A stretch of 64,000 bases of DNA from Anthoceros angustus (GCA_010909165.1 VJWM01000106.1:186001-250000); one strand, 5' to 3'; numbered from the stretch's first letter, positions 19,927 through 41,540 are shown. Numbers and translations: made by a program. The notes: a model not told the origin generated them from the letters alone.

Positions 19927-22791
19927 TCACAAGTTGATAATAGTTAGTGTTTCACTGTGTTCGTTACTCCCAACCAAAAAACTATGCACCAGTCCTTCCA
20001 TATCTGTCCACCAGCTCTGGCCTGGCTGCTTCCATGCCCTGATAGTTTTTCTCTTGGCCTGCATCTTCTGTGCCTGCTCCCACATCCGGGCACTTGTATA
20101 TATTCTCGACATCAACACATATGCTGCAGCATCTTTGCTGTGCAGCTTCGTTGCTTCATCGAAAGCATGGCATCCCACCTCCACATTCCTCCACTTTCGA
20201 CATGCACCCAAAAGAGTGTGCCAGACTGCAGAATCAGGCTGTACAGGCATTGCCCTTGCCAAAGCAAGTGCCTCATCCAGTTGTCCTGCACGACCCAGGA
20301 GATCCACCATGCACGAGTAGTGCTCTGTCGAGGGGGTGATGCCGTAATGTCTGCTCATAGCCTCAAAGTACTCTCGACCCTTGTTCACTAGACCCCTGTG
20401 ACTGCACACTGTTAGGACACTGAGGAACGTGATGCCGTTTGGCTGTATGCCATCCTCTCTCATTCTAAGAACCAACTCAAACACCTCTTCAGTGTCTCCT
20501 TGATTGGTGTATCCTGCAATCAGGGCATTCCAGGCTGTGTCATCTCGTTCGGGCAATGCCTCGAATACCTGTCGTGCATCACCCATGCTACCGCACTTTG
20601 CATACATGTTCATTAGACTACCAGCTACAAGCGGATCAGCTTGGAGCCCCTGTTGCTTAATGTGTGCATGGAGTTGCCTTCCCACATACAAAGCTGCGAG
20701 ATTTGCACATGCCTGGAGGAGACACACAAATGTCACAGAGTCAGGTGCGAGAATACCATCAGCTTGCATAGCACTGTAGAGACGAAGGGATTCCTGGCCC
20801 ATGCCGCTCTGGGAATGTGCTGCTATCATGGCACTCCATGTGACCAAATCTTTGTGAGGAAGTCTGTCGAACACGCGCTGGGCATTCTCTAGGCTGCCAC
20901 ACTTTGCATACATGTGTACCAAGCTGCTGGCTAAAAATACATCAGCTTGAAGGCCTCGTTCTCTGATCTCTGCATGAAGCTGCTTTCCCTGTTCCAACGC
21001 CAGGGTGCCCACACTTCCACATGCCTGCAGGAGGCACACGAATGTCACAGAATCAGGCGGAAGAATGCCTTCTCCTTTCATACCCCTGTAAAGATGAAGG
21101 GCTTCCTGGCCCATGCCCTGCTGGGAGTATGCTGCTATCATGGCATTCCATGTCACCACGTTTTTTTCACTAAGTTCGTCAAACACAAACTGAGCATCCT
21201 CTAGGCTGCCGCACTTTGCATACATGTTCACCAGACTACTGGCTACAAACACATCAGCTTGAAGTCCTCGTTCTCTAATTTGTGCATGAAGCTGCCTCCC
21301 CTTCTCCAAGGCTGCAGTGCCTACACTTGCACAAGCCTGCAGTAGGCACACAAATGTTACAGAATTGGGTGTAACATGACCTTCTTCTTCCATAGCCCTG
21401 TAGATACGAAGGGCTTCCTGCCCCATGCCCTGCTGGGAATATCCGGCTATCATGGCACTCCACGTCACCACATTCTTTTCACCGAGACCATCAAACACAC
21501 CCTGAGCATCCTCTAGGCTGCCGCATTTTGCAAACATGTTTACCAAGCTGTTTGCGACTGACACATTAGCCTCAAGTCCCCGTTCTATAATTTGTGCATG
21601 AAGCTCTCTTCCCTTCTCCAATGCTGAGGTGCCCACACTTGCACATGCCTGCAGTAGGCACACAAATGTCACAGAATCGAGTTCAACGACGCCTTCTCCT
21701 TGCATGACCTTGTAGAGACGAAGCGCCTCCTGCCCCATGTCCTGCTGGGAATACCCTGCTATCATGGCATTCCAAGTCACCACATTCTTTTCCACAAGTG
21801 CATCAAACACCTCACGAGCATCCTCTAGGCTGCCACACTTTGCATACATGTTCACTAAGCTCCCGCCAACAACTGTATCAGCTTGAAGTCCTCGTTCTCT
21901 AATCTGTCCGTGAAGCTGCTTCCCCGTGTCCAAAGCCGTGCTGCCTAGACTTGCACATGCCTGAAGGAGGGACACAAATGTCACAGAACTGGGTGCAACA
22001 ATATCTTCTTCTTGCATAGCCCTGTAAAGCTGAAGGGCTTCCTCCCCCATGCCATGCTGTGAATACCCTCCTATCATGGCATTCCACGTGACCACATTCT
22101 TCTCACTAAGTCCGTCAAAAACCCTTCGAGCTTCCTCCAAGCTCCCACACTTCGCGTACATGTCCACCAGGCAACTATAGACAAACAAATCAGGCTCCAG
22201 CCCACTGGCCAACACATCAGCATGCACCTGCTGCCCAGATTTCAAATCTCCCCCCCTTGCACAAGCCTGAAGGGCTGCCACGAACACATGCCCATCTGGC
22301 CTTTCACATGACATCCTCATTCGACGATACAATTGCACAGCCTGCTTATCCTGTCCGTGCTTAACATGCGCAGAGATCATGGTGGACCACGTGAAGGCAT
22401 CTGGCTCGGCAACCATGGTGAAGACATCCACAGCTTCTAGCAATCTGGCATGGGAAGCATACATACGCAGGATGTGGTTGCACAGGAACGTGTCCGATTC
22501 ATACCCCTTCTTCACGGTTAGTGAATGAACAAACCGACCCAGAGGAAGATCCTTCTTCCCCACACATTCCTTCAGCACCATATAAAACAGAGATCTGGAG
22601 ATACGACAGTTTGTGTGCGTCAGAACTCCCAGAGCCTCGACAGCTTCGGGGAGCCGCCCCTGCTGACATAGATTCCTAACGGTCTCAGCCGTTACACTCC
22701 TTTCGTATCCTGCAGGCACGCTCGAGTGGAATATCAGTGCAGCACGACCCATGTGCGTATCCAGCGCATCCAACCCCGCAGGCTTGTACAA
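19927..22791 (-). CDS. PLS-class PPR protein (PPR1), E1/E2 plus WW-type PG box, no DYW domain
   Basis: 954-aa ORF of P-L-S triplets ending KQPGQSWWTDMEGLVHSFLVGSNEH...*. The ORF opens on TTG; the first ATG is at 22752. Confidence 0.93.
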   Translation of the reverse strand: MYKPAGLDALDTHMGRAALIFHSSVPAGYERSVTAETVRNLCQQGRLPEAVEALGVLTHTNCRISRSLFYMVLKECVGKKDLPLGRFVHSLTVKKGYESDTFLCNHILRMYASHARLLEAVDVFTMVAEPDAFTWSTMISAHVKHGQDKQAVQLYRRMRMSCERPDGHVFVAALQACARGGDLKSGQQVHADVLASGLEPDLFVYSCLVDMYAKCGSLEEARRVFDGLSEKNVVTWNAMIGGYSQHGMGEEALQLYRAMQEEDIVAPSSVTFVSLLQACASLGSTALDTGKQLHGQIRERGLQADTVVGGSLVNMYAKCGSLEDAREVFDALVEKNVVTWNAMIAGYSQQDMGQEALRLYKVMQGEGVVELDSVTFVCLLQACASVGTSALEKGRELHAQIIERGLEANVSVANSLVNMFAKCGSLEDAQGVFDGLGEKNVVTWSAMIAGYSQQGMGQEALRIYRAMEEEGHVTPNSVTFVCLLQACASVGTAALEKGRQLHAQIRERGLQADVFVASSLVNMYAKCGSLEDAQFVFDELSEKNVVTWNAMIAAYSQQGMGQEALHLYRGMKGEGILPPDSVTFVCLLQACGSVGTLALEQGKQLHAEIRERGLQADVFLASSLVHMYAKCGSLENAQRVFDRLPHKDLVTWSAMIAAHSQSGMGQESLRLYSAMQADGILAPDSVTFVCLLQACANLAALYVGRQLHAHIKQQGLQADPLVAGSLMNMYAKCGSMGDARQVFEALPERDDTAWNALIAGYTNQGDTEEVFELVLRMREDGIQPNGITFLSVLTVCSHRGLVNKGREYFEAMSRHYGITPSTEHYSCMVDLLGRAGQLDEALALARAMPVQPDSAVWHTLLGACRKWRNVEVGCHAFDEATKLHSKDAAAYVLMSRIYTSARMWEQAQKMQAKRKTIRAWKQPGQSWWTDMEGLVHSFLVGSNEHSETLTIINL

Positions 22792-23168: not shown

Positions 23169-25381
23169 CTACTCTGTGCGTTTGATCTTGAGCGGTAGTC
23201 CCTTGTATGGTGAATTGAAAGGAAGCTTCATGGTCGGCCCGTCCTCCAAGACCTGCCACCTATAGAACAGAAAACATGCAAGCCCTGAGACAGGAAATCG
23301 GTGAAAGCATGGATGACGAGCCAGGCAACGGTGTCGTCGTCGACTGACCTGAACTTGGTGACGAGATGGTGAAGGAAGACAAGGACCTCCACTTTGGCCA
23401 GCTCATTTCCCACACACAGATGCTCTCCTGCTCCGAAGGGTGCGTATGAGGTACCCCTTCGTGGTGCCTAGCCACGAGCATTGGACATGCTTGTCAGCTT
23501 GTGTGTGTGTGTGTGTGTGTGTGTCCCAAGCTTTTAACTGCTGCATCGGATCTCACCTCAAATCGTGAAGGATCGAACTTGTCTGGCTCGGGCCACATGT
23601 TTGGATCCAGGTGGACGTGTGTAACTATGGGTCTCACTTTCCAGCCTTTGGGAATGATGAAACCTGTGCAGCACAGTGAGCTGATGAGAGTCGGTCAGTA
23701 GCAATGTTTCCACAACCATGCGGGACGAGGATTCACCTTTGTATTCCACATCAACCACGGCCTCACGGACAATGACATCGGAGATTATGTGGGCTAGTCG
23801 CAGTGCCTCCTGCATCACCTGTAGGACATTTCCCTCAACTTCAGATCAGATGCCCGTCTCCAGTGGGACCAAGCAAGCAGGCACGGGCCTGTGTTATGTA
23901 CCTTCGGGGAGAGATCCATGTCCTTCAAGTCATCCCAGGTGAGAGGCTCATCCACGCCTTTCCTGGCCCTGATGCTGTCCTGCTCAGCCTGCTCATGCAC
24001 CATCATCTTGGCCTGGTGATTCTCTATGGCTTGTTAAGCCCTGTTGCGCTAAACTTTGTTAAGCATGGGCTGGAACGCACCTTGACAGCTGCAAGGAGAG
24101 GGGGATTGTCGTGGAGAAACTTGAGGACCCATGCGAGAGCACTGGCTGTTGTACCGTTGGAGGCAACCAGGATACCGATGATGTTATCTGCCAACTCATC
24201 ATCACTCAAGGGATCTTCCTGTAATCGATCAGCTTCCATCAGAAACGAGTCCAAGAGATCATCAGGCGTCGAGTCCTTTGCTATCTCCCTCTTTGCACGC
24301 CGTCTCTGCACAAGACCCTCGAGCTTGGCCACAACTCTTTGCCGAGACTGCAGCCGATCAAGGTGACAGGTGAGCGATTTAGCAGACACCTACAGTGGCT
24401 CCGGTCCTTCCTACGCGTACAACAGCCAGAATCTGAACGAGATTGTCTCCCTGAAACCTGGAGGGTCTTGCGCCATTGGAAGCCAGGAAGATTGATGGGG
24501 AAGATGGATGTGAATCCCCTCTCCATCTCAGTGAAGAGAGCAGAAAGCTCCTGCACCTCTGGTGTCCGACATTCCAACCCGAACACGGTGAACATGCCAA
24601 CCCCGAGCGTGAACTGGAGATGCACATGCAGCAGCAAGAATGTGGTACACTTGTGATGGTCATGTCGCTGCAAAGCCAATGGGTGCAAGTACAATCAATG
24701 AACCAGATTGCCTACCTGCTCAACTGCATAGAGGAAGGAAGGAATAGTGGACTCGGGTGCCCATGAATTGAGGGTCATCAGAGCCAGCTCTTCGATGCCT
24801 GCAACCATATGCTTGAGTGCCCCAGGAAGCAGGTGTCTGAGATGCAATTTGCGAGTCCGGGAATGCGCATCTCCGAAGACGAAGTTCACATATTTGGGTC
24901 CAAGAATAGTTGTGACGATCTTGGGATATATGGGCTTCAACTCTTCCGACTTGGTCACCATCACGAACTTAAAAGCCTCTGCAGACGTGGTGATCACAGT
25001 CGGCCAGCCCAGCAGGTGGGTCTTGTACACCTCCCCGTGTCTGCAACCACGAACGTAACATCCTCATTGTAGCATCTTCACTCCGTTTGCCTTTGATTCA
25101 TGAATCCAAGCTAATTATGACAAATGAATTCACCTCCTCGAACGTTCAGTTGAGAAGCCGGTGGTGTCCTTGATGAAGTCCCACGTTTCTCCAATGACAG
25201 GCCATCCCATGGTGCCTGGGGGCAGATTCAGAGGCTTCAGGCTGAGCATGGGCCAGCCATCCCGAAAGCTTATGTACCCGTAACTGCAACACCACCAGAA
25301 CGTGGCTAACGTGACCACTGCTGTGACAAGCAGCAATGGCACGATCCGGGCTACGCTGGATAACAACGGTAGCCAATCCAT
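23169..25381 (-). CDS. Cytochrome P450 CYP-a, CYP85 clan (CYP707-like), multi-exon
   Basis: TM anchor then [14 protein letters not shown]; [11 protein letters not shown]; K-helix EALR; [13 protein letters not shown]; heme motif [16 protein letters not shown]; last exon [29 protein letters not shown]. Confidence 0.92.
23501..23524. repeat. (GT)12 microsatellite in a CYP-a intron
   Basis: Read directly from the sequence. Confidence 0.95.
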
Positions 25382-25654
25382 CTGCAGGCGCAGAGCTCGG
25401 CAAACTTCCACGCTCTGTGAAGTGCACTACTGTGCAGTAACATGAAGAGCATCTCTTGACACACTTCTGAAAAGGCATGGCCTATGGCCCGTTTGGGACA
25501 ATCCAAAGTTTTATAATTTTTTTCTCTTTTCAAAAGCTGAGCTGGAGATCCACCGTGGCCAATGGAGCTCCGGGTCCGCCCGCGACATCGGCGAGTCCGT
25601 GCTATCGGGCTCCAGAGGACTACGACACGAGGTTCCGCCATCACCAGGGTGAGC

Positions 25655-25870
25655 ACTGAGCACTCCTACACCGCCTTCGACGACGAGGCTGCTTGGTAGC
25701 CTTCCTACCCTGATTCCTACCATCTTCCAGGCGTACGAGTACGAGGGAGGCAACGGCCTCTACACCTTCGCGGAGGAGGACACCAAGCCGGCCAACAACG
25801 GAGCTGTACATGTTTTGCCTCCTCCGAAGCAGATGCAGCCTGGGGAAGGGTTTGTGCTGCGGGTGTGGAA
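25655..25870 (+). pseudogene. Fragment of an unidentified coding-like sequence with an inverted homolog at ~28980-29215
   Basis: ctgagcactcctacaccgccttcgacgacgaggctgct and gcctctacaccttcgcggaggaggacac match the reverse complement of 28980-29215. Translations HSYTAFDD / HSYTTFDD and LYTFAEEDTKPAN / LYTFAGEDTGKPAN. Confidence 0.45.
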
Positions 25871-26357
25871 GCGGCCGTAAGTGGAAGGAAGTTGTTTCAG
25901 CTGGCATCGCATGCTTTCGTTTCAGATGTAGATGCGATCGAGGATCACAGAGGCTTGTGAGGGCTTTTGGTGTGTCAAGCTTAGGCAGTCGGGAGGCTTG
26001 TGCCGTTGGCTTGCCCATGGGGCCGCATCAGCAGGCTCAGCACTCAGCAGCCGAAGCCGATCGGGCCTTCGCTGCAGAGGCGGGGGGCGGATGAGCAGAA
26101 GGGCTGCCAACTTGGCGGACGCAGCCAGCTGGAGCGCCAGCTCGGCAGGGTGGCCTACCCAGGCGTCGGGTCGGACCCAGTGCCACGATGTCACCTACAG
26201 GGAGCCGGTACCCGCTCTCTCTCTACAAATCGTTCCCCGACAAAAGGCCCGGGCGACCCGGTCGGAAACCATTTTTTACATTGTGGACGGCTCCGTACTT
26301 TTCGGATCTCGCGCACGAGACGGGTGCAAGTCTAGGGAGTTGGGCCAGCTCCGAGAC

Positions 26358-27202
26358 CCCGTCGCCTAAGGCTAACGCAAACTTAATGAGCCCTGCCATT
26401 CGTACCGCCCGTGTGGCCACGCACCCCGATGCAAAGCCGAGAGCATGAGGCCGGCATGCGGGCATGCTTCTCTTTCTTTCCGCCGTCTCCTTTTCCGGCA
26501 ACGGGGCGTCCGTCGTCGCTCCTCTCAACGGCCCCGTCCGCGCTCCTCTTATGGTCACCCATCTCTGGTCTCAATATGTTCACTCGATCACGAACTCTCA
26601 CTGTCCTGTTCATTTTGAACATACTGTAATAGATTATGTTTTCTCACATGCAATAAAATCAGCTACACGGTCAGCAGGAATGTAAGCGCGCTTCACATTC
26701 ATGTGCATTTTCATCTTCCCTCATTCATTTTCATGATTCCCTACAGCCTATGACAAATGCTCCTTGGTGAAGATGCCGGGCTCCGGTGTCTGCACTTGAG
26801 TGTGAGGCAAATGTTCCATTCCGCTGACATCACAATTTTGGAGAGACTCCGCTTGCTCGATCGTGCCGTCAAGCTTCCTCCGAATCGAGCCGCATTAGAA
26901 CGGGTTATAAATACTTGAAACGCTGCGTTTTGGCGCATAAGGAACGAGAAGGGATGGGGAAAAAGGAGACCAGGCGGGTGGCGGTGCGAAAGGACGCGTT
27001 GAAAGGAGCGCGGGCGGAGCCGTTGAGAGGAGGTGGAGGGAGCCCTTGAGAGGAGAGACGACGGACGCCCGTTGCGGTAAGGGAGACACCGGAAAGAAAG
27101 AGAGGCATGCCCGCATGCGGCCTCATGCCTCGGCTCAGACGGGTGCGTCACGGTGCACGAATGGCAGGGCTCATTAAGTTTGCGTTAGCCTTAGGCGACG
27201 GG
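26358..27202. mobile_element. Non-autonomous Mutator-like (MULE/foldback) element, 845 bp
   Basis: Terminal inverted repeats of ~200 bp whose outer 46 bp are perfect (26358-26403 vs 27157-27202), flanked by an exact 9-bp direct repeat CTCCGAGAC (26349-26357 and 27203-27211). Confidence 0.85.
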
Positions 27203-27344
27203 CTCCGAGACGGGTTCCAGTTTAGGGTTTTGGCTTGGGAGGCTCTTTTAAGGTACGTAGCTATCATTTTCATTTTTTCAGTTATTTTTTCTTTTATTTT
27301 TTATTTCACGTACTAACGTCTTGTTGGTTTTGGAGCCACATATT

Positions 27345-27439
27345 GAAGTCAGAAGAGTAGACGTTATTAATAGGCGAGATGGGAAATCCCACCTACCCCT
27401 AAAGTCCGAGGAGCAACATCCCAAAAAGGACTAAATGTG
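27345..27439 (-). mobile_element. ~95-bp 5'-truncated copy of the RLE-LINE 3' tail, with a target-site duplication
   Basis: The reverse complement matches 50590-50692 (…cccatctcgcctattaataacgtctactcttc). Flanked by tttggagccacatatt (27329-27344) and tttggagccatgtatt (27440-27455), 14/16 identical. Confidence 0.7.
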
Positions 27440-27774
27440 TTTTGGAGCCATGTATTCATGGCCCCCGATGGTGAACTTCCGGTCAAGGCCCCAGTTACCC
27501 TGCCGAGCTGGTGCTCCAGCTGGCTCCGTCCGCCACGCTAGAGTTTTAAGTCGGTAAACACCAGTTGGAATGTCAAAGAAGCGACATCACAGAAAAAAAG
27601 GGGTGAAACTTCTGGGAAACTTCTGGATGTCCCAAGCGGCATACCATAATAACCAAGTTGATTCGTCTAGTGTATAAGCAAATGGCCATGAAATACATGT
27701 CACCGTGAAAACCAAGCTGACCAGATGGCACCTACAGCCACGATGGCACCTACAGCACATGGAGTTTCCAGTTA

Positions 27775-27837
27775 CCCGGTATCCCTTCTCTCTACAAACC
27801 CTAGCCCGGTATCCCTTCTCTCTACAAACCCTAGCCC
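27775..27837. repeat. Perfect 30-bp tandem duplication
   Basis: cccggtatcccttctctctacaaaccctag x2. Confidence 0.95.
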
Positions 27838-27984
27838 CTCCTGAACCCAATATGTTGCATGTACTTCAGGCTCTTCTCCTCCGCGCTTGTGTGCATGCCA
27901 TTCCTCTCGGTCACTAGGCGTCTACATCTCCGTGCCAACGCTTCGTTCTTGCCATCATTTGCTCCATGGTGTGTACTTTTGTTT

Positions 27985-28382
27985 TGCTAACATGTTCTAT
28001 TTATGCTTAGAGTTTCCTATAATTTGTAATACTTGTGTGTTATATGGCTAACATGACTTATTTATATTTATAAGTAAATCTAACTTTATTTTGTATTACT
28101 TTTTTTCTTTATGGATAACATTACCTACATATTGTTAAGGTTTTCTATATTTTGTAATACTTATCCATTATATGGCTAACATGTTCTATCTATGGGTAGA
28201 GTTTCCTATATTTTGTTATCATTGTTCGTTATGTAGTTAACGTGTCTTATTTATAGTTAGTGTTTCCTATATTTTGTAATACTTGCCTCTTATATGGCTA
28301 ATATGTCCTATTTATGGTTAGTGCCTCCTATATTTTGTAATACTTGAACCTTACAAGGCTAACATGTCCTATTTATGGTAGA
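27985..28382. repeat. AT-rich ~61-bp minisatellite, about 6 degenerate copies
   Basis: Unit approximately gctaacatgtcctatttatggttagagtttcctatattttgtaatacttg...ttatatg. Confidence 0.85.
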
Positions 28383-30022
28383 CATTATTTTGAGTTGCCA
28401 CCTGCCAAGCCGGATGTGGACTACAAAATGGCAGCATTGAGAGACCACAACAACTTGCTCCCCCATGATTATGCCTCCCATTATAGGACATTTTGGAAGA
28501 GACCATTCTATAACCTATAAGGAGTCCAAAACAACAAGTGAACATACGTTATGGTGAACCAACCATATTATTCGATGTTTTGAGAGAGAACCGCAACATG
28601 AATCGAAACAACAATAAGTGACACAAAGAGCAAAAATATGGTAATAATTAAAATATCTTATAAGAGACCCAATTAACAGTAAAAAAAATCAGAATGTCAA
28701 TAACCAACCATATTAGTCCAAGAAAACCTCAATATGGACTGAATATGTGGCTCACAATGGAAAAAATAAGGTGATTATCAGAATAATGTATAAAAATAAT
28801 AAATTATGATAAGCCATCTGAATATTGGTAAAGTAACCATAATAATAAAAAACTATAATTTGTTAGAAATCCATATTCACAATTTAATCGAATAATAGGA
28901 CAGAAATGCAATGTTGTTGCTGAGCCTATTGATGTGGTCCCATGAGCACGTTCACGGCACAGCCTCTCGCATGTAGACGCACCAAAATCTTCCTCAGGCT
29001 GCATCTACTGCAGAAGGAGGCCAAAAAGGTCTGTGGTTGGCTGGCTTGCCCGTGTCCTCCCCAGCAAAGGTGTAGAGGCGATGCCTTCCTTGTATGCCTA
29101 GAAGAGCAGTCAAGCCCTTTGTTAAAGTCGGTATGACACTCCGCCCGAAAGGAGTCAAGTGTAGGAAGTCTGCTGAGCAGCCTTGTCGTCGAAGGTGGTG
29201 TAGGAATGCTCAGATTGGTGACAGCCAAACTAGCCATTAGTGGCTATGAAGGGCAAGCCCGTGCCATCGGGCTCCAAAAGATCGTCCACGGTCTCCATAA
29301 ACTAATCTGGAGTGCTCCCAAAGAATTCAAAGCGGCCAGATGGTAGTTGCAGAGTCCCAATCGAAGAGCTGCGAGCCCGAGCTTACATCGTCGTCATAGG
29401 TTGTCATACCTGTAGACGAGCAGCATCACAGCTAGCTCCTGCTCCACATCTCCTCCTCCCGGTTGCATGCCCTTGTCACCTTGCCGAGTGTCACCGTGCG
29501 GCAAGACCTTGTCACCTTGCAGTGGCGTGTCGCCAGTCGGCTCGCCACTGGAGTTTTAAGTCGTTGGACACACGGAGTTTTAAGTCGTTGGACACACCCC
29601 GTTGCAGTGTGGAGGGACATCACAAAAAAAAAGGAATGAAACATTTAAATGTCCCAAAGGACATGCCATAAGTTATACACTTAGACCGCTCAACTTAATT
29701 TTTTTACTGTTTTTAATTCATGATAAATTTCTTCCATCGTGTGAGGTTATATTGATTGTAGAATGGTAGACTCATTCCATAATCCCGTGTTCAGGGGGCC
29801 TTGGCAAGCTTGCCACTCCGTGCCCGTTCTCTACGCGCGCCAATCTCCTCTACGCGCTTTCACACATGCAATCCAGCCTGAGGTATCTTGTCTGGTCAGG
29901 CAATCGATGAGGGGAAATAGGGTACAGCGCTATACAGAAACAATCGACTTAATTGCGTTGTTCAATCGTCTCCTCTTTTGCAGCTGGTGGCCCTGGTGGT
30001 GCGCAAAATATCAGTTTCTGGA

Positions 30023-32977
30023 CTATGTTGGTAAACTGGCTCCCTTCCTTAGCTTTACGGTTAGATTTTGCAGCAGGTCACACAGTTGTTCATGATCTGG
30101 GTGGCGGCCATCTCCCACTAGAAACGTGTGGGCCTCCTCATGAACTTGGATCCACGTCCTGCCTGGCTCCTTCCATGCACCTTCCCTTCTTCTCCAGCCC
30201 TCCACCATCTTTGCCTTGTCCAAAAGGCCAGCAGCAGCATAGATCTGCGACATTAGTACATACGCGGCAGAATGCTTTGGTTCTAGACTCACTGCCCCAA
30301 GAAATGCCCACTGGCCCAAGACAATGTTGCTATGCTTCCGACAGGCAGACAGCAGACACATCCACATGGACAAATTGGGGTGCAATGGCATGCTTGACAG
30401 CAGATTCTCTATCATTGTGAAGTATCCTGCACGCCCCAGAAGGTCTATCATCGTCACGTAGTGATCAATGTCTGGATGTAATCCATGATCTCTCGTCATG
30501 GATTCAAAGTACTCCAAACCTTTGTCTAATAGGCCAGCATGACTGCAAGCCGAGATGAGTGAGAGAAACGTGATTCCATTGGGATGAATACCAGCAAGCT
30601 GCATGCTCTCAAAACAGTGCACAGCCTCTTGGCCTAGACCATGCTGAGCATATCCTGTGAGCATTGTATTCCATGTAACCACGTCTTTCATGGCTAAGCT
30701 GTTGAACATCTTGGAGGCTTCATCCAAGCTCCCACATTTTGCATACAGGTCCACCAGACAGCTACCTATAACCACATCTGCTTCCAGTCCCTTCTCCCGA
30801 ATCTGAACATGGAGCTGCTTTCCCTGGTCTAACGCTCCGATGCTGCCACAAGCTTTCAGGACGGATGCAAAGGTCACAGAATCAGCTGGAGTGATGCCCT
30901 CCTGGTTCATACTTGCATAAAGAGCAAGGGCTTCCTGTCCCAGCCCTTGCTCAACATATCCCACAAGCATCACAGTCCATGTCACAACATCTTTCTTGGA
31001 TAAAGTGTCAAATACCCTGCGGGCCTCGATTAAGCTCCCACATTTTGCATACATGTACACCAGGCAGCTCCCGACAAGCACATCCATTTCAAAAAGTTGT
31101 TCCTCAATCTGGAGGTGAAGTTGCTTCCCCTGATCTAACGCCCCAATGCTGGCACATGCCTTGAGTAGGCACGCAAATGTTACACTATCCACTGGAGTCA
31201 ATCTCTCCTCTTGCATTCTAGCATACAGAGTAAGAGACTCTTGAACAAGCCCAAGATCTGCATATCCCGAGATCATGGCAGTCCATGTCACTACCGTCTT
31301 CGAGGTGAGATTGTCAAACACCCTAGAAGCCTCATCCACACAACCACATTTCGTATACATGTCCACCAGAGAGCTCCCCAGAATGGGATCACCTGCCAAG
31401 CCTTTCAACTGAAGCTGTCCGTGAAGCTGCCTTCCCTGCTCTAACGCTCGCAAGCTGCCACAAGCCTTCAGGAGGGACGCAAAGGCAACGGAATCAGCAG
31501 GGGTGATACCCTCCTGCAGCATACTCGCATAAAGCGCAAGAGCTTCCTGCGTAAGCCCTCGCTCAACATAAGCGACAACCATGGCAGTCCAAGTTACCAC
31601 ATCTTTCATCGGCAAATGTTCAAACACCAAACATGCATCATCCAAGCTCCCACACTTGGAATACATGTCCACCAGACAGCTCCCGACAACCACATCATCT
31701 CCCCATCCCTGTTCCTCAACTCGGGCGTGTATCAGCCTCCCCTGCTCCAAAGCTCCAATGCAGCCACACGCCCGAAGGAGACAAACGAACATCACATGAT
31801 CAGCTGCAGCTAATCCTTCCTCCTCCATATCTGTATAAAGTGCAAGTGCCTCCTGACCCAACCCATGCTCAGCATACCCTGCAAGCATGGTAGTCCATAT
31901 CACCACATCCCGCCTGCTCATCCCATCAAGCACCCTGCGGGCATCACCCAACCTCCCACATCTCACATACATATCCACCAGGCAGCTCCCCAGAACCACA
32001 TCCCCTTCCATCCCACTCTCCAAAGCCCGAACATGAACCTCCCTCCCCAACGCCAACTCCCCTGTGCTCCCGCACGCTTTCAGCAAACAGGCAAACGTGA
32101 AACCATCAGCCTTCCTCCTCATCTCCTCCTCCATCCTCCCATACAGGGCAAGTACTTCCTCACCCTGCCCATGCAGCACATACCCTGCAAGCATAGCATT
32201 CCAAGTCACCACATTCTTCACCTCCAATCCATCAAACACCCTGCGGGCATCCCCCAAGCTTCCACACTTCACATACATATCCACCAGGCAGCTCTGCACA
32301 AATCCATCAGACTCCACGAAACCCCTCAAAACATCTACATGCACCTCCCTCCCCACCTTCAAGTCCCCTCTCCTGCCGCATGCCTTCAGCACCGCCACAA
32401 GTACATGACTGTCCCCGACCTCCCCCGACTCTCGCATCCTCCTGTACAACGATATGGCCTCCGCAGCATCCCCATGCTCAGCATTTCCATAGATAATAGC
32501 AGACCACAAATACGCGTTGGGCGCTACCATCTTATCAAACACCTGCCTCGCCTCCTCCAACCTCCCACAACGAGCAAACTCCCGGATCACATGGCTGACC
32601 AGGAACTCGCTACACCCGTACCCATTCCCCACAACAAGACCATGGATCCCCCTCACCCCCTTCTCCCCACCAACACAACTCTTCAGCACCCAATACCACA
32701 GTGCCGAAGGCACATAATCCCCTCGATGCACCAAGCTCTCCAGAGCCCCAACACCTCCCCCCTTCACAACCCCACTCTTCTTTTTCTTCTTCCCCTGTTG
32801 CGTAGTTCCGATTCCGTCTCCAGCAGCTTCCACACACTCCTCATCGAAGGTAAATCCTTCCTTCCTTCCTGTTCTTGTAACCAGGACATGCAGATTCCTG
32901 GCTGCAGCAGCGCCAGCACCAGCTTGCATAAAAATGCCGCTGCTGCGTCTTGCAACCACGACAAGGCTGTGCAACAT
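30023..32977 (-). CDS. PLS-class PPR protein (PPR2), E+ subclass, probable organellar presequence
   Basis: 984-aa ORF with an R-rich, acid-poor N-terminus and PLS triplets; ends WKEPGRTWIQVHEEAHTFLVGDGRHPD...KLRKG; no DYW domain. Confidence 0.93.
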   Translation of the reverse strand: MLHSLVVVARRSSGIFMQAGAGAAAARNLHVLVTRTGRKEGFTFDEECVEAAGDGIGTTQQGKKKKKSGVVKGGGVGALESLVHRGDYVPSALWYWVLKSCVGGEKGVRGIHGLVVGNGYGCSEFLVSHVIREFARCGRLEEARQVFDKMVAPNAYLWSAIIYGNAEHGDAAEAISLYRRMRESGEVGDSHVLVAVLKACGRRGDLKVGREVHVDVLRGFVESDGFVQSCLVDMYVKCGSLGDARRVFDGLEVKNVVTWNAMLAGYVLHGQGEEVLALYGRMEEEMRRKADGFTFACLLKACGSTGELALGREVHVRALESGMEGDVVLGSCLVDMYVRCGRLGDARRVLDGMSRRDVVIWTTMLAGYAEHGLGQEALALYTDMEEEGLAAADHVMFVCLLRACGCIGALEQGRLIHARVEEQGWGDDVVVGSCLVDMYSKCGSLDDACLVFEHLPMKDVVTWTAMVVAYVERGLTQEALALYASMLQEGITPADSVAFASLLKACGSLRALEQGRQLHGQLQLKGLAGDPILGSSLVDMYTKCGCVDEASRVFDNLTSKTVVTWTAMISGYADLGLVQESLTLYARMQEERLTPVDSVTFACLLKACASIGALDQGKQLHLQIEEQLFEMDVLVGSCLVYMYAKCGSLIEARRVFDTLSKKDVVTWTVMLVGYVEQGLGQEALALYASMNQEGITPADSVTFASVLKACGSIGALDQGKQLHVQIREKGLEADVVIGSCLVDLYAKCGSLDEASKMFNSLAMKDVVTWNTMLTGYAQHGLGQEAVHCFESMQLAGIHPNGITFLSLISACSHAGLLDKGLEYFESMTRDHGLHPDIDHYVTMIDLLGRAGYFTMIENLLSSMPLHPNLSMWMCLLSACRKHSNIVLGQWAFLGAVSLEPKHSAAYVLMSQIYAAAGLLDKAKMVEGWRRREGAWKEPGRTWIQVHEEAHTFLVGDGRHPDHEQLCDLLQNLTVKLRKGASLPT

Positions 32978-33390
32978 TCCCCGCAGGACCGCCCAGCATC
33001 GTCCATTTCTTCACTCGCTGCAGATATGCATAAATGTCAATCCCAGCAAACAATCAGCTCCGAGCATGGCCTGGAGTTCTCCGATGAACGTATACGATAA
33101 CATTTGACAACTCTGACATGCCATGCCAAGATGCAAAGGCGTGCGCAAACTGATACGATCCAAGTGGCAAGGACCCGAAGAAAGCCGTGAAGTTCTGCGA
33201 GAGCAGGACGGTTTGCTCGTACCCAACTTGATCCTGGGCACGCGAGATATCGTCGATATGACAGGGAATATCTGCACGGAGTGAGCAACGCAAAGGTCTG
33301 CCCTGGCAGTTTTGAATCCGAGGGGAACGACGCTAAGCGCTTGCTTGCTTGGGCTCGGCAAAACAGGCATTGCCATGTGTAGACAGAATT

Positions 33391-35551
33391 CTATTGGATG
33401 CGTGTGATCTTGACTGGGAGGCCCTTGTATGGTGATGTCAAGGGAAGTTTGGTTGTCGGCCCGTCTTCCAAGACCTGCCACCTACAGAAACCGTAGTAAA
33501 GTTCAGAGAGATTTTGCGATTCATGTGATCGGCAACACTGTAACAGTGCTCCAGCCGTTGGCTGACCTGAACTTGGTGATGAAATGGTGCAGGAAAACAA
33601 GGATCTCCACTCTGGCCAGCTCATTTCCCACACAGAGATGTTCTCCAGCTCCGAAAGGTGCGTACAAGCTGCCCCTCTGTGGTGTCTGGCCATTCAGAAG
33701 CTGCGTGTCAGCTTGTATCTCTGTCCCAGATCCATAAGCTAGCATGCATAGTCTGCTATACCCACCTCAAACCGTGAAGGATCGAACTTGTCTGGCTCAG
33801 GCCACATCTGTGGATCCATGTGGAAGTGTGTGACTACAGGCTTCACCCTCCACCCCCTGGGAATGACAAAGCCTGTACAGAGCAACACAGTTAGCTGATG
33901 AGCGGCGGTCATCAGCAGAGATGTATCCGCACTCCATAGGCCATGACGAGACCTGTGGCCCACCTTTGTATTCCACATCTACCACGGCCTCTCGGGTGAC
34001 CACGTCGTAGAGGAGGTCTGCTATTCTTAGAGCTTCCTGCATAACCTGCGTTCCTTGACTTGGTCAGGGATATGTCCTGTCCGCCTCGTCCCCAGGGGTA
34101 GCAAAGCATGGCATACCTTGTAAGTGAGAGACATGTCCTTCAAGTCATCCCAGGTGAGGGGCTCGTCCATGGCTTTCCTTTCCTTGATGGTGTCCTGCTC
34201 AGCCTGATCATGCAGCACAATACTGGCCTGGTGATGGTTCCAGACTTGCTAAGCCTGTGCATTCCTTTCTACGGTCAGAAACGGACCTTCACAGCTTCTA
34301 GGAGAGGGGGATCGTCATGAAGAAACTTGAGGATCCATGTGAGCGTTGTGGCACCCGTAGCATTGGACGCAAACAGCAGACCGGTGACGTTGTCTGCCAC
34401 CATATTATAAGTCAAGGGATCTTGCTGTGAGGGATCAGCTTCCATCAGAAACGAGTCCAACATATCATGAGGTGTGGAGTCCTTTGCCATGTTTCTCTTT
34501 GCGAGCCGTCTCGCTATCAGCCCCTTGAGCGTGTTCAACACTCTTTGCCGAGACTGCGACCAAGGCCAGGGCTTGAGCACACACAACGTCATACAGGACT
34601 CACTTCATCAAGCTTGCATTTGACTGTCACCTGGAGGCTCTGGCGCCATTGGGTGCCAGGAAGGTTGATGGGAATGATGGTAGTGAACCCCCTCTCCAGC
34701 TCAGTGTACTGTGAAGAAAGCTGCCTGGCTTCTGGTGTCCGACTCTCCGATCCGAACAGAGTAAACATGCCAACTCCAAGAGTGAACTGGAGATGCACAC
34801 CAGCAACAGGCACTAGTACATTCGTGAATTCATATTCATTGCAAACACATCTCCGAACTCAGCTGCTCTGGCCTACCTCCTCAACAGCAAAGCGGAAGGC
34901 AGCAATGGTAGACCCCGACGCCCAGGAATTGAGCGTAATCAAAGCCTCCTCTTCAATGCCTGCAACCATATCCCTCAGTGCTCCAGGAAGCAGGTGTCTG
35001 AGAGGCAACTTCCGCACGCGGGAGTGAACTTCTCCCCACATGTAGTTCACATAGCTCGGTCCCACAATGTCCGTCACCACCTTGGGGTACACATTCCTCA
35101 GCTCCTCCGCCTTGCTCAGCATCACGAACTTGTAAGCCTCCGCAGATGTGGTGACCACCGTCGGCCAACCCAGCAGGTGCGTCTTGTATATCTCTCCATA
35201 TCTGCAACTTGCAAGCAACAAGGTGCTAATGTCAGCCTCTCCATAGCCAGCTTCCGTGCTGCATTCATGCTCATCGCTCGTCCTCATCCACCCTTGTAAG
35301 TTTCCAGAATTCCACCTCCTCCACCGCCTAGCTGAGAAGCTGGTGCTGTCCTTAAGGTACTCCAGCGTTTCCCCGATGACGGGCCAGCCCATCGTGCCTG
35401 GAGGCAAATTCACATGCTTCAGGCTGGGCCAGCCGCCCTGGAAGCTCATGTACCCGTAGCTCCGAAACCACCAGAGTGCTGCGAGCATGGTCCCCGCTGT
35501 GGCCAGCAGCCCCAGTACACTCCATGCTATGCTGGATAACAGCGACTCCAT
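33391..35551 (-). CDS. Cytochrome P450 CYP-b, CYP85 clan (CYP707-like); closest paralog of CYP-a
   Basis: [14 protein letters not shown]; EALR; [13 protein letters not shown]; [16 protein letters not shown]; last exon [29 protein letters not shown]. Confidence 0.92.
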
Positions 35552-35923
35552 TTGCACATACTGCAGACAAGAACTTGAAGCACAACAAACGCCAAAGCTC
35601 TGCTCAAGGAAGAAATGGCAGCATCCACATGACTGAATGGAATGTGGCAGGAAAGCCAATTCAGAATCCGACTCACACTTCAGCACTTCCCAGAGTCATC
35701 CTTGGTCAACACCGACCTCGGCTTTTCTAATGCAGAGCCCGTATCTCTAATATAAAAGTACAAATGGCGTCGTCTCCTTTTGCAGGTGACGACGCTGCCA
35801 GTGAGATGCTGGAAAGTGGAAACCACGTGTCCCTCTAACAGGAATGCACATCTGCTGCAGCAGAGGCGGTTACACAAATGGTGCAAACAGAAGTCCTTCA
35901 GCATATCTACAGACTACTTCTCT

Positions 35924-38070
35924 TCACTCTGTGCGGGTGACTCTGAGGGGCAAGCCTTTGAAAGGAGCGATAAAAGGAAGCCGCATTGCAGGACCCGTCT
36001 CCAGGACCTCCCATCTGAGCAACAGCACTGGTCAGAAGCTGAATCCCGTTTCACAGTCGGACGTGTGTGAAAGCGCAGGAAGGAAGGTGCTGGACCCACC
36101 TGTACTTAGTAGTGAGGTGGTGGAGGAAGATGAGGATTTCCATTTTCGCAAGCTCCTGTCCCAGGCACAGACGTGGTCCTGCTCCAAAGGCTGCGAAGCT
36201 GCTTCCAGGTGTAGTCTGCAAGATAACGTTTGGCGTGGTTGGTACATCCATGTTGTTACAGCTTACGGCCACTGCCGACCTTTGCATCATCCTGCAGAAA
36301 CAGGGCGTCTCACCTCGAACCTAGAAGGATCGAACTTAGTGGGTTCTGGCCATAGGTTCGGATCCATGTGGAAGGGCTTGCTGGAAGGCATGACTTGCCA
36401 TCCCTTTGGAATAACAAATCCTGGTCCACCAAAGGGCAGGGATGTAGCTTAGAAAATGCAGCGAATAGAAGCTGCAAACATAATGCAGATTCCAGCTGAA
36501 GTACCTTTGTATTCCACATCCTTTGCAGTTACGCGAATGGTGTTGGGTAGCACGTTTGCGACTCTAAGGCTCTCCAGCAACACCTGCAGACAAGGAAAGC
36601 TTGCTGCATCAGTCATCAACCATGCCATTGTCTACAACTAGCACTCATGGTCAGATCCGTGAATACTCTCGAAGTGTAAACCATGGCCTTGAGGTCCTCC
36701 CAAGTAAGGGGCTCATCCAGCTGCTTTCGGCTCCTGATCTCCTCCTGCTCTGCCTGGTTCACACAGGAAAGCAGTGTAATCCCAGCAACTCTTGTCTCTA
36801 AAGGTTGCACTACATGACTGAACAGCTTGTCATGAATATCTCACCTTTACAGCCTCTAGAACATGAGGATAGTCATACAAATACTTGACAATCCAGCTCA
36901 AAGCTATGGAAGTGGTTGAATTGGATGCGAACAAGATGGCAACCAAGTTATCTACTATCTCATCATGCGTTAAGGGATCTTCGGAGGCGGGTTTCTCAGT
37001 TTCAGCAATGAAAGTGTCGATGAAGCCATCAGGTTTGGAGTCATCCTGCCTCCTGCCATTCTTTCTTTTCCAGATCAGCTTCTCAATTGTATCTGACACA
37101 ACCTTCCGAGCCTGCCATCGCAAGCCAGTCAGGGTCCAGGAGTTCTCATCAGTCTCCTGTCGAAGTGAAATGCGAATTCACATCCCAAACCTGCATGCTC
37201 CGATAGTATTGTGTGCCTGGGATGTTTAGAGGGACGCGGACATTAATTCCATTTTCAAGCTCGACGTATTTCTGTTGCAGCAGCTTCACCTCCGGTAAAT
37301 TGGAGTCCGATCCTAGCGCAGCCCTCATCCCCACAGACAGGACGTACTACAAGCACAGACAGCAATTGCACCCGTCACAACAAAGCCAGCACGTTGCTTG
37401 TTGGATCCTGCGAGTATAATCATCCACAACCAACCTCCTGAACAGCAATTCGGAAGGCCGGAAGCGTGACTTGGGGACCCCATGACCTGACAAACGTCAA
37501 TGCCTCTGCTTCCACGGCTGCCACATTATTCTTCAACGCCTCTGGCAGCAGATGCCTGAGAAACAGTTTCCGTAAGCGCTGGTGATGCTCTCCAGTAGCA
37601 AAACTAACCGACAGAGGACCCACGATGGTTGTGATGGCCTTGGGAAAGATGGGCTCCATTGTCTCATACTGTGCTCCCAGGATGAACTTGAAAGCCTCGG
37701 GGGATGTTGTCACCACTGTTGGGCGCCCCATAAGATGGGTCTTGTATACATCCCCGTATCTGTTTGCATGACAAATTGCTGATGGATCACTCCAATCCAA
37801 CAGGAATCACCTCAGCCGTGCTGTTGAGACTTCGATCATGTACCTTTTGTGGGTCGAGGCGAATGATTCTGGATCCCTCACCAGTGCCAAGGTCTCCCCA
37901 ACTATGGGCCATCCCAGTGTGCCCGGTGGTAGATTGAGACGCTTCAGACTGAACCTACCATCCCGAATGTATCCATGGCGTTGTGACCACCACCAAGCAA
38001 CAAGCATGGAGAGCCCGGTTGCTATGAGTGTGAGAACACCCCAAATCAAAGATACACCAACAGACTCCAT
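35924..38070 (-). CDS. Cytochrome P450 CYP-c, CYP85 clan
   Basis: [14 protein letters not shown]; [11 protein letters not shown]; ESLR; [13 protein letters not shown]; [15 protein letters not shown]; last exon [29 protein letters not shown]. Confidence 0.92.
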
Positions 38071-38846: not shown

Positions 38847-41540
38847 ATGGGCACCGTCCGTGGCGTAATCAGCCCAGCTGGGTTTAAGCAGGGCGCAGTA
38901 GGTTCGTCGTATGCTCCTAGGAATCATGGTTGCCCCGCACGCAGGGCAACAGCTTTTCTGGACCCAGCACAAGAAGATTGGTGGGATAACAGGTGCTGGA
39001 GGAAGGGGTCCTGGCAGCTGGCTGCTCTGGAAACACAGGTGGGTCGTGGTGCCCCTACGTCCAACTGTAGGATCCGGGATCATCGTGGCCTTCCTGGGCC
39101 TGCGGGATACGATTGGGGCGTGAATGCTGACACTGTGAGCGAGCTATGTGATCAGGAGCATCTCACGGAGGCTGTGGAGGCTTTGGGAATTCTGGTGCAA
39201 ACAGACTGTTACATATCTACATCTTTCCTTTATGATGTCCTGAAAAAATGTGTGGTGAAGAAGGACCTTATTCTGGGTCGCCGTGTGCATGCTTTCACGG
39301 TGCGAAAGGGGTATGGGTCAGATACGTTCTTGAGCAACCACATTCTGCGGATGTACGCTTCTCATGGCAGGTTACAAGAAGCGATGGATGTGCTCACCGT
39401 GGTGGGCAAACCAGATGCCTTCATGTGGTCGTCCATAATTTCTGCCCATGTGAAACACGGCCGAGACAAGGAAGCCATAGAACTGTATCATGGGATGCGA
39501 CGGTCCAGTGTGAAGCCAGATGGGCATTTGTTTGTGGCAGCTCTTCAGGCTTGTGCAAGGGGAGCAGACCTGGAAACTGGGAAGCAGGTGCATGACGACG
39601 TTCTGGCCAGTGGGGTTGAGCCTGATCTGTTTGTTTGTAATGGCTTGGTGGACATGTATGCAAAGTGTGGCAGGTTGGAAGATGCTCGAAGGGTGTTTGA
39701 TGGACTGGGTCATAAAGACGTGGTGACATGGACAGCTTTGATAGCAGGATATACCCAGCAGGGAATGGGTCAGGAAGCCCTTGAGCTTTACAGTGCTATG
39801 CAAGAAGAGAGCATAGCTGCACCCAATTCTGTGACATTCGTGTGCCTCCTGCAGGCGTGTGCATATGTAGGCGCTACAGCTTTAGAGAAAGGGAAGGAGC
39901 TTCATGCACAAATCAGAGAACGGCGTCTTCAGGCGGATGCGGTGGTAGGTTGCAGCTTGGTAGACATGTATGCAAAATGCGGTAGCTTGGAAGATGCTCG
40001 AAGAGTGTTTGACGGACTTTGTCAAAAGGATGTGGTGACATGGACAGCCCTGATAGTAGGATATTCCCAGGAGGGCAGGGGGCAGGAAGCCCTTCACATT
40101 TACAGTGCTATGCAGGAATGCTGCATCACTTCACCCGATTCTGTGACATTTGCGTCCCTCCTCCAGGCATGTGCAAGTGTTGGTACCCTGGCCTTGGAGA
40201 AGGGAAAGAAGCTCCATGCGCAGATACGAGAACAAGGACATCCTCTTGATGTTGTTGTGGGCTGTAGCCTGGTGAACATGTATGCAAAGTGTGGCAGCTT
40301 AGAGGATTCTCGGGCCGTGTTCAATGGACTTGGTGAAAAGAACGTTGCTACATGGACTGCTCTCATAGCAGGATATGCCGAGCAGGGCATGGGCCAGGAA
40401 GCTCTGCGACTTCACTGTGCAATGCAAGAAGACGGCATGGCAGCACCCAATGCTGTGACATTGGCCTGCCTCCTGCAGGCATGTGCAAGTGTGGGCACTC
40501 CGGCCTTGGAGAAGGGGAAGCAGCTTCATGCAGAGATTGGACAACGAGGGCTTCAGGCTGATGTCCTTGTATCCAACAGCCTGGTCCACATGTATGCAAA
40601 GTGTGGCAGCCTGGTAGACGCTCGTAGACTGTTTGACCTGCTCCCTAAAAAGGATGTGGTAACATGGACCTCTCTGATAGCAGGATACTCCCAGCAGGAC
40701 ATGGGTCAGGAAGCCCTCCATCTCTACAAGACTATGGAAAAAGAAGGCATTCTTGCAGCTGATGCCGTGACCTTTGTGTGTCTCCTGCAGGCCTGCGCAA
40801 ATGTGGCAGCTTTGCATCTGGGAAGACAGCTCCATGCTCAGATTCAAGAACTGGGGCTTCTCTCTGACATGAACGTAGGCAACAGTTTGCTAAACATGTA
40901 TGCAAAGTCAGGGAGCATGGCGGACGCAGAGCAGGTGTTTGCAGCATTGCCTGAACGAGACCACGTTGCCTGGAACACTCTGATTGCAGGCTACACCCGG
41001 CAAGGAGACAGTGAATCCGTCTTCCACTTGTTCCACAGAATGCAAGAGGATGGCAAACAGCCAGCCAGCATGACATTCATCTGTGTACTAACAGCGTGCA
41101 GTCATGCAGGTCTAGTAAACAAGGGGCGGGAGTACTTCTGGGCTATGAGCAGACAGTATGGCATCACTCCCACGACAGAGCACTACACATGCATGGTAGA
41201 TCTCCTGGGTCGTGCTGGCCATCTAACCGAGGCACTAGCTTTACTCAGGACAATGCCTGCACTCCCTGACGCTGTAGTCTGGCACACTCTATTAGCTGCA
41301 TGTCGAAAGTGGAACAACGTGCAAATTGGTCGTCATGCTTTCGATGAAGCAGTGAAGCTGGACAAGGGAGATGCCGCAGCATACGTGTTGATGTCAAACG
41401 TGTATACGGGTGCCCACATGTGGAAGCAGGCACAGGAGCTGCAAGCCAAGAGGAAAGCTGTCAGGGCATGGAAGCTGCCAGGCCAGAGCTGGTGGACAGA
41501 CATGGACGGACTGGTGCATAGTTTCTTCTCTTGCACATAG
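38847..41540 (+). CDS. PLS-class PPR protein (PPR3), WW-type PG box, truncated; close paralog of PPR1
   Basis: 897-aa ORF ending KLPGQSWWTDMDGLVHSFFSCT*; N-terminal motifs align residue for residue with PPR1. Confidence 0.92.
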   Translation: MGTVRGVISPAGFKQGAVGSSYAPRNHGCPARRATAFLDPAQEDWWDNRCWRKGSWQLAALETQVGRGAPTSNCRIRDHRGLPGPAGYDWGVNADTVSELCDQEHLTEAVEALGILVQTDCYISTSFLYDVLKKCVVKKDLILGRRVHAFTVRKGYGSDTFLSNHILRMYASHGRLQEAMDVLTVVGKPDAFMWSSIISAHVKHGRDKEAIELYHGMRRSSVKPDGHLFVAALQACARGADLETGKQVHDDVLASGVEPDLFVCNGLVDMYAKCGRLEDARRVFDGLGHKDVVTWTALIAGYTQQGMGQEALELYSAMQEESIAAPNSVTFVCLLQACAYVGATALEKGKELHAQIRERRLQADAVVGCSLVDMYAKCGSLEDARRVFDGLCQKDVVTWTALIVGYSQEGRGQEALHIYSAMQECCITSPDSVTFASLLQACASVGTLALEKGKKLHAQIREQGHPLDVVVGCSLVNMYAKCGSLEDSRAVFNGLGEKNVATWTALIAGYAEQGMGQEALRLHCAMQEDGMAAPNAVTLACLLQACASVGTPALEKGKQLHAEIGQRGLQADVLVSNSLVHMYAKCGSLVDARRLFDLLPKKDVVTWTSLIAGYSQQDMGQEALHLYKTMEKEGILAADAVTFVCLLQACANVAALHLGRQLHAQIQELGLLSDMNVGNSLLNMYAKSGSMADAEQVFAALPERDHVAWNTLIAGYTRQGDSESVFHLFHRMQEDGKQPASMTFICVLTACSHAGLVNKGREYFWAMSRQYGITPTTEHYTCMVDLLGRAGHLTEALALLRTMPALPDAVVWHTLLAACRKWNNVQIGRHAFDEAVKLDKGDAAAYVLMSNVYTGAHMWKQAQELQAKRKAVRAWKLPGQSWWTDMDGLVHSFFSCT

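Follow-up and report, generated by a model that had tools for sequence, protein, structure and literature searches.

Tandem P450 genes with an acid-less I-helix in the hornwort Anthoceros angustus: a putative sister clade of CYP707

The stretch of Anthoceros angustus DNA analyzed here, 64,000 nucleotides long (GCA_010909165.1 VJWM01000106.1:186001-250000; hereafter the window, from whose first base all positions are counted), carries three intact cytochrome P450 (P450) genes, CYP-a, CYP-b and CYP-c, all on the minus strand within 23169-38070. We suggest, from sequence comparison, that these genes represent an acid-less sister clade of CYP707 within a hornwort expansion that has already been reported. 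Our preferred interpretation, which we consider probable, is that they are tandem CYP707-sister paralogues encoding terpenoid oxidases that are anchored in the endoplasmic reticulum (ER), depend on O2 and on NADPH-P450 reductase (CPR), and deliver protons in an altered manner.

The I-helix and the genes that carry it

In each of the three genes the I-helix motif lies in exon 4, which is 267 nt long and in phase 0 at both ends. A first-pass annotation, made by a model from the sequence alone, had placed ASNxT motifs near ~24150, ~34360 and ~36915, and all three were found there, on the minus strand:

24147-24164, minus strand: CYP-a I-helix motif A-S-N-G-T-T, exon 4, in register with BM3 AGHETT
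34353-34370, minus strand: CYP-b I-helix motif A-S-N-A-T-G (within LLFASNATGA), exon 4
36911-36928, minus strand: CYP-c I-helix motif A-S-N-S-T-T, exon 4

Alignment of an exon-4 peptide profile with P450 BM3 sets A-S-N-x-T-T against A264-G265-H266-E267-T268-T269. The acid of the acid-alcohol pair, the loss of which had likewise been claimed, is replaced by Gly, Ala or Ser at the position of E267, the Thr is retained, and an Asn occupies the variable "x" position that precedes the acid. Reading A-S-N-(G/A/S)-T-(T/G), the three copies thus depart from the oxygen-activation consensus (A/G)Gx(D/E)T(T/S), a motif that is frequent among P450s without being obligatory. The motif codons differ synonymously among the copies (Ala GCC/GCG/GCA, Asn AAC/AAT/AAT, Thr ACA/ACG/ACC). 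The presence of ASNxT in three copies exceeds chance, yet the motif was inherited by common descent and the three occurrences are therefore not independent.

Splice models were built on the stretches free of stop codons in the three paralogues together with GT..AG pairs that preserve the reading frame, and were compared with X2, an RNA-like run from the same organism, and with X19, a run from a related organism:

23169-25381, minus strand: CYP-a gene, 9 exons, 493 amino acids (aa); splice model, Pfam p450 on exon pieces, X2 contig
CYP-a exons, minus strand: 25381-25134, 25040-24716, 24613-24458, 24347-24081, 23988-23902, 23818-23737, 23663-23557, 23467-23349, 23259-23169
33391-35551, minus strand: CYP-b gene, 9 exons, 489 aa; splice model, X2 intron joints
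CYP-b exons, minus strand: 35551-35316, 35201-34877, 34786-34631, 34553-34287, 34203-34117, 34045-33964, 33872-33766, 33685-33567, 33481-33391
35924-38070, minus strand: CYP-c gene, 9 exons, 484 aa; splice model, X2 and X19 intron joints
CYP-c exons, minus strand: 38070-37844, 37759-37435, 37346-37191, 37111-36845, 36753-36667, 36583-36505, 36420-36314, 36215-36100, 36014-35924
23737-23818 (CYP-a), 33964-34045 (CYP-b) and 36505-36583 (CYP-c), minus strand: exon 6, K-helix ExxR, reading EALR in CYP-a and EALR or ESLR in the other two
23349-23467 (CYP-a), 33567-33685 (CYP-b) and 36100-36215 (CYP-c), minus strand: exon 8, heme-binding loop

Position 23169 is the last base of the CYP-a stop codon and 38070 the first base of the CYP-c ATG. 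All 24 introns are of the GT-AG type and measure 71-114 nt, exon phases are identical across the three genes, and Pfam p450 (PF00067) matches individual exon pieces. The meander motif of the PERF type reads FDPSRF in each protein, and the heme loop, FGAG(EH/PR)LC(V/L)G, keeps the F-x-x-G-x-x-x-C-x-G spacing and the proximal Cys; the complete nine-exon models, carrying ExxR, the PERF-like motif and the heme Cys together, bear out the earlier statement that all three are intact and that there are no frameshifts. At the N-terminus a hydrophobic anchor is followed by LPPGT(M/L)GWP, a hinge of the PPGxxGWP type, and this pairing of ER anchor and hinge may point, indirectly, toward CPR dependence. 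Amino-acid identity is 70% between CYP-a and CYP-b, 51% between CYP-a and CYP-c, and 52% between CYP-b and CYP-c.

All three genes are transcribed and spliced, because spliced contigs cover each of them. The X2 run contains 58% of the sampled words of 33391-38070, approximately the exon share of that interval. One X2 contig (record 14), identical to CYP-b in its listed pieces, has introns 1, 2 and 3 removed as modelled, and the CYP-b intron-8 joint is also present in X2, in contigs not identified among the listed pieces. Taken together, X2 contigs have 8 of 8 CYP-c introns spliced out at the modelled coordinates, and the same eight joints recur in X19, in a contig whose word depth is 957 (one value for the whole contig and no measure of expression). 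The X2 joints bear CT..AC ends, which is to say GT..AG on the minus strand. As for CYP-a, a 1652-nt X2 contig aligns to CYP-b exons 7 and 8 with 16 differences in each; this being exactly the number by which CYP-a and CYP-b differ there, the contig is a spliced CYP-a transcript. In three further organisms (B, C and D), DNA contigs cover the CYP-b/CYP-c pair with about 6% differences, so that close relatives have the same arrangement.

A single RNA-like X2 contig over 35316-36014 joins CYP-b exon 1, the 372-bp spacer and the last exon of CYP-c without a break, and represents either read-through transcription or overlapping untranslated regions merged by the assembler.

The genes are under purifying selection: Nei-Gojobori ratios of nonsynonymous to synonymous substitution (dN/dS) are 0.29 for CYP-a and CYP-b, 0.20 for CYP-a and CYP-c, and 0.19 for CYP-b and CYP-c, none of them near 1. 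Synonymous divergence (dS) is 0.59 between CYP-a and CYP-b and saturated, at about 2, between CYP-c and either of the others, and the A-S-N triplet and the Thr have been maintained through that saturated divergence. The argument of the first-pass annotation that the invariant Asn speaks for selection holds in part, for purifying dN/dS and the preservation of A-S-N favor it, but CYP707 relatives have a polar residue (Q, R or H) where the Asn stands, and the exchange of Q for N is thus conservative. The substantive I-helix changes are A to S at the second position of the motif and D to G/A/S/Q at the acid position, the Q being that of the more distant carrier described below.

Relationship to CYP707 and rarity of the motif

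An exon-4 profile search against 1.84 billion cluster representatives returned 896 matches, of which the best 150, with 165 aligned I-helix stretches, were examined; ASNxT occurs in 0 of these 165. About 120 of the best 150 representatives are of CYP707 type (FAAQDTT 68, FAARDTT 30, FAAHDTT 20 and a few variants), and the named best matches are abscisic acid (ABA) 8'-hydroxylases or CYP707A of Quercus, Selaginella, Ipomoea, Nymphaea and Anthurium. The motif AARDTT, which had been taken as that of CYP707A, does occur as one variant, but most relatives read AAQDTT. Nine of the 165 stretches have neither D nor E at the acid position, FAAQGTT, IAGQITT and ISGHATS among them. ASNxT was equally absent from all 48 matches of an exon-4 open reading frame (ORF) search in 90% clusters, the 37 new ones all reading FAAQDTT, and from all 80 confirmed JGI metagenome loci, which read FAAQDTT or FAAHDTT; the latter scan used the I-helix segment, with patterns including DN..(G/A).L(F/V)AS, and an earlier metagenome scan with the exon-4 alignment, whose patterns fell on variable stretches, gave 0 matches. 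An exon-2 profile search yielded two further matches, the contigs of which are canonical FAAQDTT CYP707. When the 275-aa in-frame ORF of CYP-b (exon 1, intron and exon 2) was the query of a word search, only a 158-aa fragment, P0001, and a snake CYP26A1 were recovered, and the length window of that search probably left out relatives of about 490 aa.

It was through this exon-2 fragment, P0001, that the only other ASN-type carrier outside the close relatives was reached: a Logan contig of 3.8 kb, L001 (run SRR33208241), with the motif FASNQTT. Its gene is homologous, has nine exons, and is 55-59% identical to CYP-a and CYP-b and 47% identical to CYP-c. Its intron 6 (2503-2581) ends in TG where the acceptor AG would be expected, and its exon 8 has a gap of one base at 2860-2875, so this copy is either a pseudogene or the product of a contig error. 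In the public collections searched, the members of the ASN clade are thus CYP-a, CYP-b and CYP-c, their counterparts in three close relatives, and L001; none of the sampled CYP707 relatives shows ASNxT, and we found no sign that the motif is standard in that characterized family.

Phylogenetic analysis was carried out in IQ-TREE under LG+C20+F+G4 with 24 rows, comprising four ASN-type sequences, 15 CYP707-type sequences of at least 300 aa, two other clades, and the snake CYP26A1 as outgroup; sequences whose models were duplicated in tandem were excluded, and P0021 entered without its out-of-frame tail. The ASN clade is supported at 100/99, as is the canonical CYP707 clade including Selaginella, and the two are sisters at 99/97, with the ASN clade standing beside and not nested inside CYP707 in a sample that is without named bryophyte CYP707. 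The stem branch of the ASN clade is long (0.5). L001 groups with CYP-a and CYP-b (99/98), so CYP-c diverged from CYP-a/CYP-b before the L001 organism split off, and both sub-lineages have retained the motif. In this small sample only four alignment columns distinguish the ASN and CYP707 clades cleanly; one of them is the I-helix Ser (residue 306 of CYP-a), which is Ala in all sampled CYP707. The Selaginella sequence P0021 (XP_024528875.1, isoform X1) has residues ~349-509 that align to no P450 and are seemingly out of frame or mis-spliced.

By the convention of P450 nomenclature, members of a family share at least about 40% amino-acid identity with its named members. The full-length identity of CYP-a, CYP-b and CYP-c to CYP707A-named representatives, several of which are partial, is 33-38.6% and does not reach that line, and their I-helix differs from the FAA(Q/R/H)DTT of the family, reading FAS-N-(G/A/S/Q)-T once L001 is included. 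In other respects the resemblance is close. CYP707A, the (+)-ABA 8'-hydroxylase of the CYP85 clan, is the best-scoring relative in every search and shares with the hornwort genes the nine exons, the intron positions, FDPSRF, a heme loop of the FGxGxHxCxG type and the ER anchor; five intron positions (after exons 2-6) are common to the three genes and the canonical CYP707 contig L002, which covers exons 2-7 only. The idea of a lineage-specific CYP85-clan subfamily, put forward in the first-pass annotation along with the suggestion of a CYP85-type tree and an ASNxT survey, gains support from the distinct clade that the tree places next to CYP707 and from a survey in which L001 is the sole other carrier. 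As judged from these sequences, the ASN clade may correspond to CYP707 as its hornwort orthologue, or may instead be a paralogue of earlier origin.

Other P450s in the sample are naturally acid-less as well. Five proteins from Ipomoea batatas and I. trifida (P0069 and P0153-P0156) form a CYP707A4-like cluster, named "ABA 8'-hydroxylase 4-like", that reads FAAQGTT; within canonical CYP707 the I-helix acid has thus been lost independently. Likewise acid-less is the next clade out, which reads IAGQITT/ISGHATS and is possibly CYP722, the cluster names giving no identification. Both differ from CYP-a, CYP-b and CYP-c in their independent origin and in the absence of the Ser-Asn pair.

The expansion to which the three genes appear to belong has already been published. 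According to the A. angustus genome paper (Zhang et al., 2020; PMC7027989), the genome has 46 CYP85-clan genes, and Supplementary Table 28 lists 40 genes KEGG-named CYP707A, many with adjacent identifiers. This tandem-rich "CYP707A" set fits CYP-a, CYP-b and CYP-c by description, its function being given there by KEGG name only, and a term search of the paper and of parts of its supplement found no mention of the I-helix. The same paper credits desiccation tolerance partly to the large "ABA 8'-hydroxylase" set (PMC7027989). We consider the ABA-catabolic annotation doubtful for at least the subset formed by CYP-a, CYP-b and CYP-c, because their I-helix differs from that of every sampled CYP707 and their identity falls below the family line.

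Possible consequences of the missing acid

Redox-partner dependence, substrate class and route of proton delivery are matters that we infer for these enzymes. Under our preferred interpretation, CYP-a, CYP-b and CYP-c would stay oxidases that use CPR and O2, with a small terpenoid as substrate; candidates are an ABA-like sesquiterpenoid, an apocarotenoid acid and other terpenoids of hornworts. Along the branch leading to the clade, the I-helix acid would have been lost (D to G/A/S/Q), the residue before x would have become Ser, and the Thr would have been kept. Protons for the iron-bound oxygen would then have to pass through the Thr, ordered water molecules, the newly acquired Ser/Asn or a polar substrate group, and protonation could be slowed or re-routed, thereby shaping the product; that altered proton delivery does steer the product is a minority possibility. 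In BM3, His266, which occupies the same position as the Asn, has been described as lying near the heme iron and as mobile upon substrate binding, which makes a role for the Asn in the distal water network conceivable. A ten-mutation engineered BM3 variant that includes E267V has been reported to make drug metabolites.

Several observations weigh against this interpretation. The acid is important in model P450s, so that an ordinary catalytic cycle is not guaranteed where it is missing. The acid position varies (G/A/S/Q), and such variation fits relaxed constraint there, not a newly fixed catalytic residue. The genes of the window give no hint of a substrate, and no terpene synthase is found among them. 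Few of the sequences in the tree are full-length, and its sample contains no named bryophyte CYP707.

The simplest alternative is that CYP-a, CYP-b and CYP-c are hornwort CYP707A orthologues, that is, ordinary (+)-ABA 8'-hydroxylases in which the missing acid is a tolerated quirk. The strongly supported sister relationship to vascular-plant CYP707, the similar nine exons and intron positions, and the fact that KEGG labels such hornwort genes CYP707A would all agree with this. We nonetheless judge it unlikely, as identity (33-38%) lies under the customary 40% line, the stem branch is 0.5, and 40 A. angustus paralogues are too many for one hormone-catabolic step; moreover, phaseic and dihydrophaseic acid were detected, in one hormone survey, in the lycophyte alone and in none of the bryophytes tested, which speaks weakly against an extensive capacity for ABA 8'-hydroxylation. 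The loss of the acid might also serve non-hydroxylating chemistry within an O2/CPR cycle (C-C cleavage, deformylation, ring contraction or rearrangement of a terpenoid acid), hampered protonation favoring ferric-peroxo or carbocation routes. The precedent here is CYP114 of bacterial gibberellin biosynthesis. CYP114 enzymes all have Ala or Val in place of the acid, keep the Thr and hydroxylate with O2 and ferredoxin; their ring contraction requires the acid to be absent, and the A261D change confines the enzyme to hydroxylation. CYP17A1 T306A, in which proton delivery is perturbed, similarly has lost or lowered hydroxylation and keeps substantial C-C lyase activity. The replacement of the acid by a small residue next to an invariant Thr (G/A/S here, Q in L001) is common to CYP114 and the hornwort proteins, and the preservation of A-S-N and Thr across saturated synonymous divergence would be consistent with such a function. 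Against it, the acid position is unfixed, so that no particular residue stands out as a new catalytic one, and other P450s without the acid may simply hydroxylate. CYP114 itself belongs to a bacterial family unrelated to the hornwort proteins, works with a dedicated ferredoxin, and has been proven to contract the ring of ent-kaurenoic acid. We give non-hydroxylating chemistry a low probability, and regard as equally unlikely the idea that the ASN clade represents CYP114-type catalysis in plants, performing peroxo or carbocation chemistry (C-C cleavage, ring contraction or rearrangement) on an ABA-like or other hornwort terpenoid acid via CPR and O2.

A more radical proposal is the one made in the first-pass annotation, which compared the three proteins with peroxide-using or isomerizing P450s such as CYP74 (allene oxide synthase, hydroperoxide lyase) and CYP8A1 (prostacyclin synthase), whose I-helix has no acid-alcohol pair and has a catalytic Asn. 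In that case the enzymes would work free of O2 and reductase, with the Asn as catalytic distal residue, and the absent acid, the I-helix Asn and the nearness of BM3 His266 to the heme iron lend the comparison some appeal. The analogy did not survive closer inspection, and we rate this proposal as very unlikely: the Cys loop is of canonical length and the nine-residue insertion of CYP74 is absent, the Thr is retained where CYP74/CYP8A have lost it, the I-helix groove has not been rebuilt, the proteins carry the ER anchor and proline hinge that are usual in P450s served by CPR, and the Asn aligns with BM3 H266 at a position where CYP707 is already polar. The catalytic Asn of CYP8A1 stands at the Thr position and not at x, although a literature check gave no confirmation of this placement. 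Other acid-less motifs are those of MAX1 (AGSATT), CYP7A1 (ASQANT) and P450nor (AGNATM), which carry no weight in the present argument. Finally, decaying or functionless duplicates with a drifting I-helix would explain why the acid position differs between copies and why the sole distant carrier, L001, has two apparent lesions. Three intact reading frames, 24 canonical introns, dN/dS of 0.19-0.29 and spliced transcripts, including the word-depth-957 contig of the related organism, make decay the most improbable of the explanations considered.

Should the loss of the acid alter the outcome of catalysis, as it does in CYP114, the ASN clade would offer a natural plant system for the steering of P450 chemistry by proton delivery, and its genes could give entry into hornwort terpenoid metabolism; if the outcome is unaltered, they are one more example of a dispensable acid, something already known. 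Were the CYP114-type reading true, the hornwort "ABA 8'-hydroxylase" expansion would be a toolkit of specialized metabolism and not of hormone catabolism.

Genomic neighbourhood

The P450 genes are interleaved with four long, intronless pentatricopeptide repeat (PPR) genes that have a C-terminal E motif:

19927-22791, minus strand: PPR-E gene
30023-32977, minus strand: PPR-E gene
38847-41540, plus strand: PPR-E gene
52028-54802, minus strand: PPR-E gene

The four are 48-63% identical to one another, which suggests a local tandem family. Other neighbours in the window are Tel2-like and ARS2-like pieces and, at 10623-13976 on the plus strand, an uninterrupted ORF of 1117 aa that matches SMC_N / AAA_23 and, weakly, the SMC hinge, and that is unusual in being intronless, the region being rich in introns. 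A reading of the locus as a biosynthetic gene cluster was rejected, given a neighbourhood of PPR, SMC-like, Tel2 and ARS2 genes.

Two repeat structures were also seen. Between CYP-a and the next PPR gene lies an element of about 850 bp (26355-27205), bounded by 49-nt inverted repeats that are 98% complementary; another such pair lies inside, and the whole resembles a foldback element or a miniature inverted-repeat transposable element. At 27979-28381, in an AT-rich island, there is a tandem array of a 61-nt unit in about six copies at 67-80% identity.

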